Assembly: GCF_006345805.1 (NCBI RefSeq)
Contig: NC_043022.1
Span: 19,282,001 to 19,346,000 of the forward strand
Reading direction: 5' to 3'
Source: Octopus sinensis
Lineage: Eukaryota
DNA: 64,000 bases
Shown here: positions 1,760-60,800 of the stretch, in pieces
How positions within the stretch are numbered: position 1 is the stretch's first letter
Layout: each line of letters begins with the position of its first letter
The notes under the pieces: generated by a model
Told to the model about the DNA's origin: nothing
Database searches by the model: none
What the model saw: only the letters and a program-made list of their open reading frames with translations
Position numbers and translations under genes: made by a program

Positions 1760-1859
1760 CATTTGTCAAGAAACATCTATGGTAATCAAGTACATTAAAC
1801 AGATAAGGAATGAAAATACAGGAATATATTTTGTAATTTGCCATATTCTGCAGTTTTAC
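1760..1859 (-). CDS. P1 exon 5: VKLQNMANYKIYSCIFIPYLFNVLDYHRCFLTNG
   Basis: Long polypyrimidine tract plus AG, donor GTAAGT, 100 nt, phase 0 to 1. Confidence 0.8.
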
Positions 1860-4800
1860 CTAAAAGTAAGAGAAAAAGAGAAAATTACGACTCAAGGAAT
1901 CACATGGGTTTAGACGGGGGTCACTTTGTTCTGCATCCAGTAATTATGCAGATGTGAAACACCTAAGTTAATCCATCCTTTTACTCTTTTACTCTTTTAC
2001 TCTCTTACTTGTTTCAGTCATTTTGACTGCGGCCATGCTGGAGCACCGCCTTTAATTGAGCAATTCGACCCCGAATTGTGTGGTAGGGAGCTTGCTTTCC
2101 AATGACATGGTTCCAGGTTCAGTACTGATGCATGGCACCCAGGGCAAGTGTCTTTTACTATTGCCTCAGGCACACCAAAGTTCTGTGAGTGGATTTGGTA
2201 GACAGAAACTGAAAGAAGCCCGTCATATATATATATATATATATATATATATATATATAAATACATTCTCTTTTACTCTTTTACTTGTTTCAGTCATTTG
2301 ACTGCGGCCATGCTGGAGCACCGCCTTTAATCAAGCAATTCGACCCCCGGGACTTATTCTTTTGTAAGCCCAGTACTTATTCTATCGGTCTCCTTTGCCA
2401 AACCGCTAAGTAACGGGGACATAAACACACCAGCATCGGTTGTCAAGCAATGCTAGGGGGACAAACACAGACACACAAACACACACACATGCATATATAT
2501 ATATATATATATATATACATATATACGACGAGCTTCTTTCAGTTTCCGTCTACCAAATCCACTCACAAGGCTTTGGTCGGCCCGGGGCTATAGTAGAAGA
2601 CACTTGCCCAAGGTGCCACGCAGTGGGACTGAACCCGGGACAATGTGGTTGGTAAGCAAGCTACTTACCACACAGCCACTCCTGCGCCATTCAGTAATAT
2701 CATATTCGCTTCAACTGAAACGCTCTTTCAGATATTGATAGTCATACAGCGCCATGTTTACAGGAGCTCAGCTGTTTAAGTACAAGGTGCATTGCAGAAG
2801 CTTTGAGACTTTTTCAGGATAGACATTTATTAGTGTTAAAGAGGGAGGCGCAATGGCCTAGTGGTTAGGGCAGCGGACTCGCGGTCGTAGGATCGCGGTT
2901 TTGATTCCCAGACCAGGCGTTGTGAGTGTTTATTGAGCGAAAACACCTAAAGCTCCACGAGGCTCCGGGAGGGGATGGTGGTGGTCCCTGCTGTACTCTT
3001 TCACTACAACTTTCTCTCACTCTTACTTCCTGTTTCTGTTGTACCTGTATTTCAAGGGGCCGGCCTTGTCACTCTCTGTGTCACGCTGAATATCCCCGAG
3101 AACTACGTTAAAGGTACACGTGTCTGTGGAGTGCTCAGCCACTTACACATTAATTTCACGAGCAGGCTGTTCCGTTGATCGGATCAACCGGAACCCTCAT
3201 CGTCGTAACCGACGGAGTGCTTCCACCACAGTGTTAAAGAAGTACAAGACTCTTAAGGACTTCGTGGTATTTCGTCTGCCGCTACATTTTGGCACCTTCA
3301 CTTTAAACGACTTCTCAGATATCCTAGAGTATTGGAGGCACGATGATGATGACGGTGATGATGATGATGACGATGATGATGACGATGATGATGACGATGA
3401 TGATGACGATGATGATGACGATGATGATGACGATGATGATGACGATGATGATGATGACGATGATGATGATGATGATGATGATGATGACGGTGATGATGAT
3501 GATGACGATGATGATGACGGTGATGATGATGATGATGATGATGACGACGACGACGACGACGACGACGACGATGACGACGACGATGATGTGTTTTCGCTCA
3601 ATAAACACTCACAACGCCCGGTCTGGGAATCCTACGACCGCGAGTCCGCTGCCCTAACCACTGGGCCATTGCGCCTCCACATCCTAGAGTATACCAACAA
3701 TGTACTGCTCAAAGCAACATGTAATTTGAACCAGTCCCTTAGGCGCAAAATACCCATAGGATTCGTTTTATCTGTGTATACTATCTATCTGATACTTCAA
3801 CTCTCACCACCCAAATGGCTGAACCACAGGGATTACCCAGTTCTACCAGGTGCATACCTTTTCAAGTATCTGATTCTATCTGAATTCTCAGATAAAATTT
3901 ACATATATACATACATGGTTCCGGGTTCAGTCCCATTGCATGGCACCTTGGGCAAGTGTCTTCTGCTATAGCCTCGGGCCGACCAAAGCCTTGTGAGTGG
4001 ATTCAGTAGACAGAAACTGAAAGAAGCCTGTTGTATATATGCATATATATATATATGTATGTGTGTGTGTTTGTCCCCCTAGCATTGCTTGACAACCGAT
4101 GCTGGTGTGTTTACGTCCCTGTCACTTAGCGGTTCGGCAAAAACAGACCGATAGAATAAGTACGGGATCGATTTGCTCGACTAAAGGCGGTGCTCCAGCA
4201 TGGCCGCAGTCAAAAGTAAAAGAATATATATATATATTAAAAGAAATATATATATGCCAGGAGCGTAACCAGCCTGCTTACCTTTTCCTTCTTTGGTCAC
4301 TAAACTCTGCTTGCGAAGACCTGTTGAGGCAAGTGAAATCAAAATCAATCAAAACCAAAATCAATTCGATGACTGGCATCCGTACTAGTGGGGTGCAGAG
4401 AGCACCATACAAGTGTGATTGTTGACAGAACAGCTAACCAGCTTCCATACCAGTGGCACATAAAAGGGCACCATTCGAGTATCATCGTTACCAGCGTCGC
4501 CTTACTACCACATGTGCTAGTAGGGTGCTAATCTGAGTCCGATCGTTGCCAGAGCAGCCAACTGGCTTCCGTACCCGTGGCACGTAAAAGGGCACCATTC
4601 GAGCGTGACTGTTACCAACGTCGCTTCACTGGCACCTGTGCCGGTGGCATGTGTAAAAAAGATTTGAGAGAGGTCATTGCCAGTACCGCCTGACTGGCGC
4701 CTGTGCCGGTGGCATGTAAATAGCACCCACTACACTCTCGGAGTGGTTGACGTTAGGAAGGGCATCCAGCCGTAGAAACTCTGTCAGATCAAGATTGGAG

Positions 4801-57589: not shown

Positions 57590-57864
57590 GTACCCACGCG
57601 GCCACAATGTGGAATATAGTCCTTTGTTCTCGTGACGAACACAATTCTGTTCGTATTTCTTTGGACCAGAAGAAATATGTAAACCTAACAAGTGAAAACA
57701 ATCAAAAGTGTTTCAGCACTGAATATGAATTAGACGATGGAATAGAGCCAAATATTTTAGAATTTGCATTTGAGATTGCAAAAAATCCAAGTCCTCCAGA
57801 TTTTGAATTAGAAGTTCAAAGAAGGCCAAGATTAGTGTACGTTAAGAAGGATGAAGTCTTAAAG
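57590..57864 (+). CDS. P3 exon 2: [92 protein letters not shown]
   Basis: Acceptor tattctag, donor GTAAGT, 275 nt open. Confidence 0.75.
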
Positions 57865-60800
57865 GTAAGTAAATAAAAATAGATGCACACACACACACAC
57901 ACACACTCACACTCACACACATACATATATATATATATACATTCACAAATACACATGCCCACCAACACACACATACCATTTATTATATACAAAATTTAGA
58001 AACAACTACTAACAGTTTCATGCTTTAGAGGTACAATAATTTGGCAGATTTATATAACATGTTTCAAAGATTGCATGGCGACATGTGGTATGTTATATAA
58101 AATTGCTAAATTATTGAATCTCTACAGCATGAAACAATTAGAAGCGCTTAAAAAAATTTTATGAACATTAAATTATATTTATCTCTTACTAGAATAATTT
58201 TTCTGTTGATCCTAACTATAACAACGCGATACACTATACGTATATAGCAAAAACTTAAAGTACTTCTCAATCTAGACTCATTGATAAGCTAAAACTTCAC
58301 TCAGTTTTATTCAGTTTAAAATAGTCCATTGTTACCCATGCCAAACCATAGAACCGTTCTAACAACAAATGCCATCTATGCATTGCAGGACTTTCTTCCA
58401 TTATACGTTGAAGCAGTTGCATTGATGAACCAATTGGCGACAGCATTAACTGAGGACATAAATTACGTAAGTTATAAATTATAATGTCTGACACTGATAA
58501 TTCCCTGGCTAATCCTTTTACATTTCCTCTCATTTACTTGTTTCAGTCATTTGACTGTGGCCATGCTGGAGCACCGCCTTCAGTCGAGGAAACCAATTTC
58601 TTATTCTTTGTAAGCCTAGTACTTATTCTATCGGTCTCTTTTGCCGAACCGCTAAGTGACGGGTACGTAAACACACCAGCATCGGTTGTCAAGCGATGTT
58701 GGGTGGGGGACAAACACAACACACACATATACACACATATATATTTACATATATACGACGTGCTTCATTCAGTTTCCGTCTACCAAATCCACTCACAAGG
58801 CTTTTGTGGCCCGAGGCTATAGTAGAAGACACTTGCCCAAGGTGCCACGCAGTGGGACTGAACCCGGAAGAATGTGATTCGTAAGCAAGCTACTTATCAC
58901 ACAGCCACTCCTACGCCTCTATTTTAATATCTTCTAAATATTTATAACCATTACCGTTTGGCTCTTTTGTTATGTTTCCGTTTTTTCTGTGGTTTTTTGT
59001 ATGTTCTCCTCTTTCCTGTGAGAGTTTGCAGATAGGCTTAGATTTCCATACACAATTTAGTTCTTAACCATTTTATCTCTTCAATCCTTTGTGTTTTTCT
59101 GTTTGTTGTTCTTGCTTCACAACTCATTTCAACTCAGAGCTGTGATTACTTAACTTGGAATTCCCATACAACAATGTAACCTTCATATAGTTAAGGTGCA
59201 TTTGGCCTGATGAATTGCTTACCTGCATACCCATCTGTGCCTAATAATTACATTGGAAGATCAGCCAGATAAGAAACATATGTATCCAGGAGTTCAACTG
59301 CTCCACTCCCTCAATTTCAATCTTTATTCGCATTCACAGCAACTTTATTTGCCCACCATAAACTATATAGAAATAAATTGTCATTCTTATTGACCAGGCA
59401 TTTTGTTTTCTCTACATGTCACGGACTGCTTGAGGCTTACTAACTTGCTACACTTGGATCCTTGGATCTAGCCCTTATCTATCAATATATATATATATAT
59501 ATATATAAATTTATATATATATATATATATATATATATATATAATAATAATAATAATATATAATAATAATAATAATATTAATAATAATAATAATAATAAT
59601 AATGATAATAATAATAATAGGGAGTATAACATCAAACTTACAGGGAAAAATTCAATTTAGTATTAAATCAAATTTCACAGTATAAATATATAAAATATAA
59701 ATTAGTGATAAAACTACTATTATGCAACTCAAACAGTGATAGACATAAACCAATACATAAATAACAAATAATATATAGAATTAATATAATATAATATATA
59801 TATATATAATATATATATATATATATATATATATATATATATGTATATATTGATATATTGGTTCTTTCTTGTTCTGTTATAAACACAATTTTATCGTAAT
59901 CCGATGGGTTACTACATACTTTGTAGAGTACAAATTCATTATTCTTATATAAGAATATTGTTGACAGTGACTTCAAAGTTGTGGCCAGCTAAGCCATCAA
60001 TGGACTGTGATGCATTGGAGTAAGTCTTGCCTTTATATAGTCTCTGTTGAGTAAAAATCAATTTTGGGGTTGAGTGGGGTGGTAATTATGTTTTTATGGT
60101 CTCTTGTTAAGGAAAGGTGTTTTGGAACAATTTTGTTATATTAAATTTGGTTTCATGCTATCCTTTATAATTTATTCATGCATGAATAACTTTATAAACA
60201 AACTTGTAAGTGTTTCTCTTTCGTTGGGGAGGCACAAGGTGAGAGAGTATTTTTATTGCTTTTGGTATTATTGGATTTAATGCTTTTGTTTTGACAATAT
60301 ATAGGTCAAATGTACAAATGTCCAGTATATATGCCCTGGGTAATTGTGTGTGTGTGTGTATGTGTGTGTGTTTGTGTGTACACTACTCCAAACTGATCTT
60401 AAACCGAGGAACAAAATACAAATTATACACTATAAATGTTTTACCATCAACATAACCATCATCATCATCATCATCATCATCATCATCATCATCGTCATCA
60501 TCATCATCATCATCATCATCATCGTCATCATCATCAACATCATCACTGTCATCATTATTAATTTATTTGAAATAACTTACTGCTGTTAATTTTGTTGATT
60601 TACTTTATCTTTGGTACTTGTTCAAAATCTCTTTCTTAAAGGGATGTATTTTGGTTACATCAAATGGAATTCTGATGATCAGACAACGCCAAAAGTGGAG
60701 AAAACTACGCTGCTTCCCTGAGGACGGTTTTTTACGTTTAACATTTTTGCTGTGTTTTTCTCTTTTAAACTCATCAAGAAATTCTTTTGTTTCACACACA

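Follow-up and report, generated by a model that had tools for sequence, protein, structure and literature searches.

What is encoded by a series of short exons that a list of open reading frames (ORFs) fails to report? This question is raised by a 64,000-nucleotide (nt) stretch of the Octopus sinensis genome (CM016884.1:19282001-19346000 as placed by the coordinates of two public loci, assembly GCA_006345805.1; bases 1-21387 matched at 100% identity), referred to here as the window. A first-pass annotation made from the letters alone had proposed three paralogous split genes in it, P1, P2 and P3, which would encode secreted proteins composed of tandem PLAT/LH2-like units. The new analysis indicates that P1 (LOC118768046) and P2 (LOC115224696) are probably a tandem gene pair belonging to a small octopod family, the ancestral product of which was a type I membrane glycoprotein with PLAT-fold units, and that P3 is a truncated, inverted partial duplicate of P2. 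This structural and evolutionary description is held with reasonable confidence. The family is indeed absent from a bacterial-style ORF list, as had been stressed; the claim that it is missed entirely goes too far, since NCBI RefSeq annotates P1 and P2 as uncharacterised proteins.

The exon structure provides the first part of the answer. AG...GT intervals that remain open in the required phase were enumerated, after which the junctions were read directly. P1 has five minus-strand exons of 55/194/91/206/100 nt in the window and P2 has nine core exons of 55/236/91/206/100/233/94/227/100 nt on the same strand (Table 1). In both genes, every acceptor is an AG that follows a pyrimidine tract, every donor is GT (usually GTAAG), the phases alternate between 1->0 and 0->1, and no stop codon interrupts the chain. 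Exons 6-9 of P1, which encode units 3 and 4, lie past the left edge of the window and were mapped on the public locus L001. Spliced in this way, both genes reproduce RefSeq proteins exactly: the start of P0003, the 443-aa protein of LOC118768046, matches spliced P1 residue for residue, and P0001, the 489-aa protein of LOC115224696, is rebuilt exactly from twelve window exons, namely the nine core exons, an extra one of 78 nt, a stalk mini-exon of 42 nt and eight bases of the tail exon (22232-22239). Both genes are, furthermore, conserved in three other octopod species, which together with the RefSeq identity places the exon structure far beyond chance. The proposed signal peptide with four two-exon units of about 100 aa holds, and the unit motifs quoted in the first-pass annotation are present in the sequence. 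Regarding the claim of three paralogs with shared exon lengths and phases, P1 and P2 hold, with AG/GT bounds and open frames, but P3 is truncated and has lost the splice sites of its exon 3.

A search of 5.8 billion proteins with spliced P2 returned 14 proteins, all of them from Octopus species, unnamed and without Pfam domains. The alignment of these 14 members and their isoforms reveals a common plan, consisting of a signal sequence (the N-terminus is hydrophobic and has small residues at positions -3 and -1, ...TQA/T), four units of ~95-115 aa, a stalk made of N-glycosylated 14-aa mini-exons, a transmembrane (TM) helix and a cytoplasmic tail. The units begin with W-x-[ILM]-x-[VL], and units 1-3 close with Y-x-C...C and contain paired cysteines in the last hairpin, where the extra cysteine probably forms a disulfide. 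Members carry 4-17 NxS/T sequons in the ectodomain; the 10-17 found in P1, P2 and their orthologs, the paired cysteines and the TM helix of relatives uphold the secreted or extracellular character suggested previously. The tail contains the tyrosine motifs [DE]IYxN[LMT] and, at the C-terminus, [IV]YE[ED]L, and that of Argonauta hians comprises about six DIEQLYTQPIK repeats. The first-pass annotation had overlooked that full-length members span the membrane in type I orientation and end in a tail with tyrosine motifs. Each unit pairs a phase 1->0 exon with a subsequent phase 0->1 exon and is therefore a phase-1 symmetric module, so that duplication or shuffling of units leaves the frame intact. 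Two relatives from outside the window, P0006 and P0009, possess a fifth unit that combines the first half of unit 2 with the second half of unit 1; this is the product expected from duplication of the exon 3 + exon 4 pair and shows that phase-symmetric exon pairs do get shuffled. In UniProt, P0008 (A0A0L8ID31) is named 'Vitellogenin domain-containing protein', but the name applies to one isoform only, the sibling is uncharacterised and Pfam lends no support. It was rejected as an annotation artefact, probably an automatic match on a lysine-rich, repetitive alternative C-terminus.

Which fold do these units adopt? AlphaFold2 folds the full-length P1 protein into an all-beta chain of four modules, each with about eight strands (predicted local distance difference test (pLDDT) 75, predicted template modelling score (pTM) 0.65). 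Unit 3 of P2, modelled alone, likewise yields eight strands (pLDDT 82.9, pTM 0.75). When this unit was compared with the PDB by Foldseek, 50 of the top 50 matches were PLAT/LH2 domains at a probability of 1.00 and 6-16% identity, with no C2 or immunoglobulin (Ig) domain among them. The best match is the 12-lipoxygenase (12-LOX) 8ghc (template modelling score 0.71 within a range of 0.57-0.71, root-mean-square deviation (rmsd) 3.3 Å, E 4e-4), and the matches further include PLRP2, pancreatic lipase, lipoprotein lipase (LPL), 5-, 8R-, 11R- and 15-LOX, and Rab6IP1. The models thus support a PLAT/LH2-type fold for unit 3. Units 1, 2 and 4 appear to be PLAT-like as well, because they share the strand count, the two-exon structure with its intron site (in each of the four units, a phase-0 intron directly precedes the final three strands), the landmark residues and a collinear, non-significant profile match.

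Neither gene of the pair retains the membrane anchor. In RefSeq, single loci can have both anchored and soluble isoforms; at LOC115217968, for instance, isoform X1 has a TM helix and a tail, and X4 ends just past exon 9. The O. bimaculoides orthologs of both window genes (P0177/P0002 and P0004) are anchored. For P1, the 10 kb downstream contain no detectable TM or tail exon, and the RefSeq model ends in GIWCF* (the asterisk denoting a stop) by read-through of the exon-9 donor. For P2, no TM-like exon lies between the stalk and tail exons: the search of 22240-25578 returned only microsatellite-derived hydrophobic ORFs, each of which lies upstream of exon 10. With no TM exon left ahead of it, the tail exon is entered out of frame (DT*), which results in the RefSeq ending ...KIDT*. 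If the canonical AG two bases downstream is used for the stalk exon, the frame stops at ...ITKEI*, and read-through of the exon-9 donor would give GIWCI*; P1, P2 and the O. vulgaris protein P0005 have the GIWC[IF]* ending in common. The 3' end of the RefSeq P2 model looks homology-forced. With the TM exon of P2 lost and the exon-9 donor of P1 read through, both genes would yield soluble products only, and their proteins should, as judged from the sequence, be soluble. The extra 78-nt exon of the RefSeq P2 model is used in no other family model, paralog or ortholog, including the true ortholog P0177. It is overlapped by an opposite-strand ORF that is conserved across P1, P2 and P3 at the corresponding intron (7373-7555 (+), 42792-42989 (+) and 58297-58533 (-)); this ORF has no Pfam match and could be a conserved intronic element or repeat.

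The distribution of the family is narrow. An exhaustive hmmsearch of the family profile against 1.84 billion representative proteins gave 28 matches at E<=0.001, without a tail of weak matches to any broader family, and the divergent matches for which the source was looked up stem from O. bimaculoides, O. vulgaris, O. sinensis and Argonauta hians. The lineage restriction proposed earlier is therefore sustained, and the family is restricted to octopods, with a soft negative for squid, cuttlefish and Nautilus, the proteomes of which may be under-represented in the library. Each Octopus genome holds about ten family loci in a few clusters; in O. sinensis, a further cluster lies on this chromosome at a distance of ~5 Mb. 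In the searchable literature library, no paper mentions the six LOC identifiers, and the two papers that came up for PLAT domains in cephalopods do not concern this family; PLAT domains of cephalopod surface proteins are described in none.

Across the family, mean pairwise identity climbs from the membrane-distal to the membrane-proximal unit (0.40 for unit 1, 0.46 for unit 2, 0.52 for unit 3 and 0.66 for unit 4). Between P1 and its O. bimaculoides ortholog, the synonymous divergence (dS) is 0.20 and the ratio of non-synonymous to synonymous divergence (dN/dS) is 0.54 overall, with 0.58 in unit 1, 0.21 in unit 2 and 0.84 in unit 3. As such, P1 is a real gene under weak, uneven constraint. The DNA around exon 9 of P1 and P2 is 97.6% identical (window 25387-25723 versus L001 30626-30961), compared with 72-85% in the 5' half, which points to either gene conversion in the 3' part or strong constraint on it.

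Two duplications become apparent when the window is compared with itself by blastn. An old direct duplication pairs ~1.7-11.6 kb with 33.6-44.8 kb at 71-85% identity and is visible only near exons, and a young inverted duplication pairs 37100-46873 with 60868-55189 at 89-95% identity. P3 lies in the right arm of the latter. This arm ends at ~60868, about 160 bp past the exon 3 relic, and hence no 206-nt or 100-nt exons follow; together with the lost splice sites, the end of the arm identifies P3 as a truncated fragment and not a third gene. P3 is younger than the split between O. sinensis and O. bimaculoides. P2 and P3 differ by 6 synonymous and 46 non-synonymous changes (dS 0.084, dN/dS 2.0); positive selection is not claimed, given the few changes (chi-square ~2.7, p ~0.1).

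How does this family compare with known systems? The PLAT/LH2 domains (PF01477) of lipoxygenases, pancreatic and lipoprotein lipases and Rab6IP1/DENND5 are likewise eight-stranded beta-sandwiches of ~110 residues, with a similar terminal pattern of a hydrophobic strand, W-x-L and TG-x-x-Y-x-C. In contrast to these, the octopod units are only 6-16% identical to them, lack a Pfam or profile match and an accompanying catalytic domain, occur in 4-5 tandem copies within an ectodomain, possess an extra cysteine and are predicted to be N-glycosylated. LOXHD1 of hair-cell stereocilia resembles the octopod family in consisting almost only of tandem PLAT-fold modules. It is, however, cytosolic and has neither signal peptide nor TM helix, whereas the octopod family has a signal peptide, sequons and, in relatives, a TM helix, and the exhaustive profile search revealed no sequence relationship between the two.

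The first-pass annotation had set the family apart from known PLAT proteins by its signal peptide, pointing to LOXHD1 and polycystin-1. This contrast was incomplete, as vertebrate lipases also carry a PLAT/LH2 domain behind a signal peptide. The same arrangement occurs in plant PLAT1 (PMC4232524) and in Plasmodium CCp3/LAP1 (PMC10892792). These proteins contain a single PLAT domain, alone or with adhesive or catalytic domains, and none is receptor-like and of type I with tandem PLAT units and a tyrosine tail. An architectural analogue, and an analogue only, is provided by KIR/LILR-like Ig receptors, which share the signal peptide, the tandem phase-1 beta-sandwich modules, the TM helix and the tyrosine-motif tail; both are clustered multigene families with anchored and soluble forms in which the distal domains vary most. 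The modelled octopod fold, however, is PLAT and not Ig, and the octopod tails miss the consensus of the immunoreceptor tyrosine-based inhibitory motif (ITIM). What is new is thus not the extracellular PLAT domain itself but an architecture in which a tandem PLAT-fold array makes up the entire ectodomain and is joined, in type I orientation, to a TM helix and a tail with tyrosine motifs.

The ancestral full-length product of the family probably comprised a signal peptide that is cleaved off, four units or, in some members, five, a mini-exon stalk, one TM helix and a tyrosine-motif tail. By analogy with the PLAT domains of lipoxygenases, lipases and polycystin, the variable distal units might have as their ligand a lipid-bearing surface or else a partner protein, with the conserved unit 4 and the stalk acting as a scaffold. 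Anchored members could signal or traffic via their phosphotyrosine-type motifs, and soluble forms, such as the products of P1 and P2, might serve as secreted binders or decoys. This receptor/decoy mechanism is put forward tentatively, as one possibility among others.

The PLAT assignment, on which this model builds, has to be weighed against several observations at the sequence level. Pfam detects no PF01477 at E<=10 in P1, P2 or the 14 family members, only TM-segment noise, and unit profiles find nothing meaningful among PDB sequences. Alignment of the unit profiles by hhalign to a lipoxygenase PLAT profile, built from the verified 5-LOX domain of human, homologs of it and two lipoxygenases from the PDB, reaches E-values of 0.06-0.31 against a profile so narrow (7 sequences, effective number (Neff) 2.3) that a missing match counts for little, because a large-database search with the 5-LOX PLAT domain gave almost only near-identical vertebrate ALOX5 fragments. 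Sequence relatives of the 5-LOX domain also included a bacterial alpha-toxin. Unit-to-unit alignments are collinear and not significant (E 0.02-0.3); an apparent 95% probability for unit 1 versus unit 2 proved to be an artefact of the hybrid units of P0006 and P0009 and fell to E = 0.019 once these were removed. The alignments behind the AlphaFold2 models are shallow (13-14 sequences), unit 3 alone was compared singly with known structures, and the Logan-derived P0036, which had been considered as a transcript joining the signal peptide to unit 1, was discarded, as the contig is genomic and consists of intron tract, acceptor, exon 2 and a GTAAGT donor. Might the units then be no PLAT homologs at all, but an orphan fold family, maybe nearer to C2 or Ig-like domains, whose likeness arises from convergence or from a drift of AlphaFold to a common sandwich? 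The absent sequence signal and the shallow alignments would fit, as would the best whole-chain E-values, which belong to multi-C2 ferlins, and the unit 2 profile, which weakly touches the 'YxC' stretch of a T-cell receptor V domain (E 0.31). Yet the ferlin alignments of the whole P1 chain have an rmsd >20 Å and are accompanied by compact lipoxygenase/LPL matches at a probability of 0.99-1.00, the unit 2 matches to T-cell receptor V-alpha and ribosomal L27 are at chance level, and the single-unit search with unit 3 has no chain of C2-domain proteins (ferlins, extended synaptotagmins) in its top 50. The top 50 of unit 3 cover the full unit length, come from four protein families and are all PLAT, and the motif W-x-L...TG-x-x-Y-x-C is placed as in PLAT domains. 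An orphan fold is therefore improbable. The PLAT reading advanced in the first-pass annotation is, as far as the models go, largely right: the check that it had suggested by Pfam came out negative and that by structure prediction positive for unit 3, so that multi-PLAT stands as a fold assignment for this unit and as a conclusion by likeness for the others, without detectable PLAT similarity in sequence or significant homology between units.

A different concern is whether P1 and P2 still function in O. sinensis. The P2 3' end is decayed and the O. sinensis copies could be losing function; pushed further, both genes would be decaying copies of a once-anchored receptor pair, that is nascent unitary pseudogenes, with homology-forced RefSeq models. 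P2 lacks a TM exon, its tail relic is frameshifted and its RefSeq C-terminus needs a non-canonical acceptor, the 26-aa RefSeq exon would disrupt unit 1, the dN/dS between P1 and P2 is 0.98 over units 1-2, and P3 is clearly dead. These points are countered by nine consecutive open exons with perfect splice sites in each gene and by the dN/dS to the ortholog, with its low in unit 2. Moreover, soluble isoforms ending after exon 9 are annotated at intact loci and GIWC[IF]* recurs, so that a soluble product looks like normal family output, and wholesale decay seems a distinctly unlikely account of the pair. The function of a living family, in turn, could be structural: its members might be adhesive matrix or surface-coat glycoproteins, with tail tyrosines for sorting or endocytosis (YxxPhi). 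Heavy predicted glycosylation of the ectodomain and the existence of anchored and soluble forms are in keeping with this, and so are the tails: [DE]IYxN[LMT], [IV]YE[ED]L and LYTQP fall outside the strict ITIM [SIVL]xYxx[IVL], none having the required -2 residue, and there is no paired YxxL/I at the spacing of an immunoreceptor tyrosine-based activation motif (ITAM), which also counts against signaling in the model above. Distal units that evolve quickly next to a conserved unit 4 are, however, more typical of recognition molecules, and the YxN and YEEL-type motifs are kept from Octopus to Argonauta and multiplied in Argonauta. A purely structural role is thus judged unlikely, and type I membrane glycoproteins with PLAT-fold units, alongside soluble forms, remain the preferred description of the family.

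Table 1 Features of the P1-P3 locus (window coordinates)
Feature	Position	Strand	Description
P1 exon 1	11333..11387	-	55 nt, ATG and signal peptide, ends in phase 1; P0003 residues 1-18
P1 exon 2	9178..9371	-	194 nt, unit 1 first part, phase 1->0
P1 exon 3	6721..6811	-	91 nt, unit 1 second part, phase 0->1
P1 exon 4	5347..5552	-	206 nt, unit 2 first part, phase 1->0
P1 exon 5	1760..1859	-	100 nt, unit 2 second part, phase 0->1
P2 exon 1	44505..44559	-	55 nt, ATG and signal peptide
P2 exon 2	44154..44389	-	236 nt, unit 1 first part, phase 1->0
P2 extra exon (RefSeq model only)	42820..42897	-	78 nt, canonical splice sites, adds 26 hydrophobic residues within unit 1
P2 exon 3	37251..37341	-	91 nt, unit 1 second part, phase 0->1
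P2 exon 4	35225..35430	-	206 nt, unit 2 first part
P2 exon 5	33676..33775	-	100 nt, unit 2 second part
P2 exon 6	30458..30690	-	233 nt, unit 3 first part (unit modelled alone)
P2 exon 7	29365..29458	-	94 nt, unit 3 second part
P2 exon 8	27146..27372	-	227 nt, unit 4 first part
P2 exon 9	25579..25678	-	100 nt, unit 4 second part and stalk, phase 0->1
P2 stalk mini-exon (as in RefSeq)	23372..23413	-	42 nt, non-canonical acceptor (intron ends AT)
P2 cytoplasmic-tail exon relic	22004..22239	-	74% identical to O. bimaculoides tail, 1-nt frameshift
P3 exon 1	57419..57473	+	55 nt, protein identical to P2 exon 1
P3 exon 2	57590..57864	+	275 nt, open, canonical splice sites; diverged faster than flanking intron
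P3 exon 3 relic	60614..60704	+	91 nt, TG before (AG in P2) and CT after (GT in P2); not spliceable as in P2
Inverted duplication, left arm	37100..46873		P2 exons 1-3 and upstream DNA; blastn self-comparison
Inverted duplication, right arm	55189..60868		P3; lacks the 4-kb AT-rich insertion of the left arm

The genes and the inverted duplication are embedded in DNA rich in microsatellites and in repeats resembling short interspersed nuclear elements (SINEs). The SINE-like repeat, ~400 bp long, is present in >15 copies at 74-96% identity and in both orientations (among them 2266-2688, 7641-8040, 15693-16124, 17084-17493, 42368-42752, 50753-51141 and 58529-58917), and many spurious ORFs of the six-frame list arise from it. 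The two arms of this duplication are separated by a spacer (46873-55189) that has inverted repeats of its own (48479-49821 versus 55191-53848, 95.6%), so that the whole of ~37-61 kb is a large imperfect palindrome; near its center, a 205-aa ORF (51184-51801 (+)) shows a Cys/His spacing that recalls C2H2 fingers, without a Pfam match. Intron 2 of P2 holds an AT-rich block of ~4 kb (38134-42166, GC 0.18-0.20) that is missing from the otherwise collinear P3 arm and is probably an unclassified mobile element. Its ORF at 40959-42194 (-) encodes 411 asparagine-rich aa with a GIY...YIG-like stretch (AIYIGSTS); neither this ORF nor several others in the window match Pfam or the PDB. Related AT-rich DNA forms an inverted pair at 11813-13266 (11.8-13.3 kb). 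A tandem array at 13977-15435 comprises 8 copies of a 184-bp unit (95% matches), partial copies of which lie at 30757-31171, with one and a bit directly upstream of P2 exon 6. Finally, an inverted repeat pair at the right edge (62091-62589 versus 64000-63505, 83% identity) carries ORFs on both strands, those tested being without a Pfam match, and probably represents retroelement fragments.

Cephalopod genomes contain many lineage-restricted genes without an assigned fold or function. With the new results, one such octopod family gains a fold (a PLAT-type sandwich), a topology (type I or secreted glycoprotein) and an evolutionary pattern, in which variable distal units, a conserved proximal unit and exon-pair modularity are combined with recent duplication and decay. 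Entries named 'uncharacterized LOC' are thereby turned into a testable hypothesis of surface recognition, the practical value of which is modest for now. In its boldest and rather doubtful form, this hypothesis holds that incirrate octopods invented surface recognition receptors whose ligand-binding ectodomains are strings of PLAT modules in place of Ig, LRR or lectin domains, with coupling to phosphotyrosine signaling and with soluble paralogs, P1 and P2 among them, that resemble decoys or opsonins. If true, PLAT would here for the first time form the repeats of a type I receptor. The family would also widen the uses of a fold otherwise found mostly as an accessory domain of lipid enzymes and polycystins.

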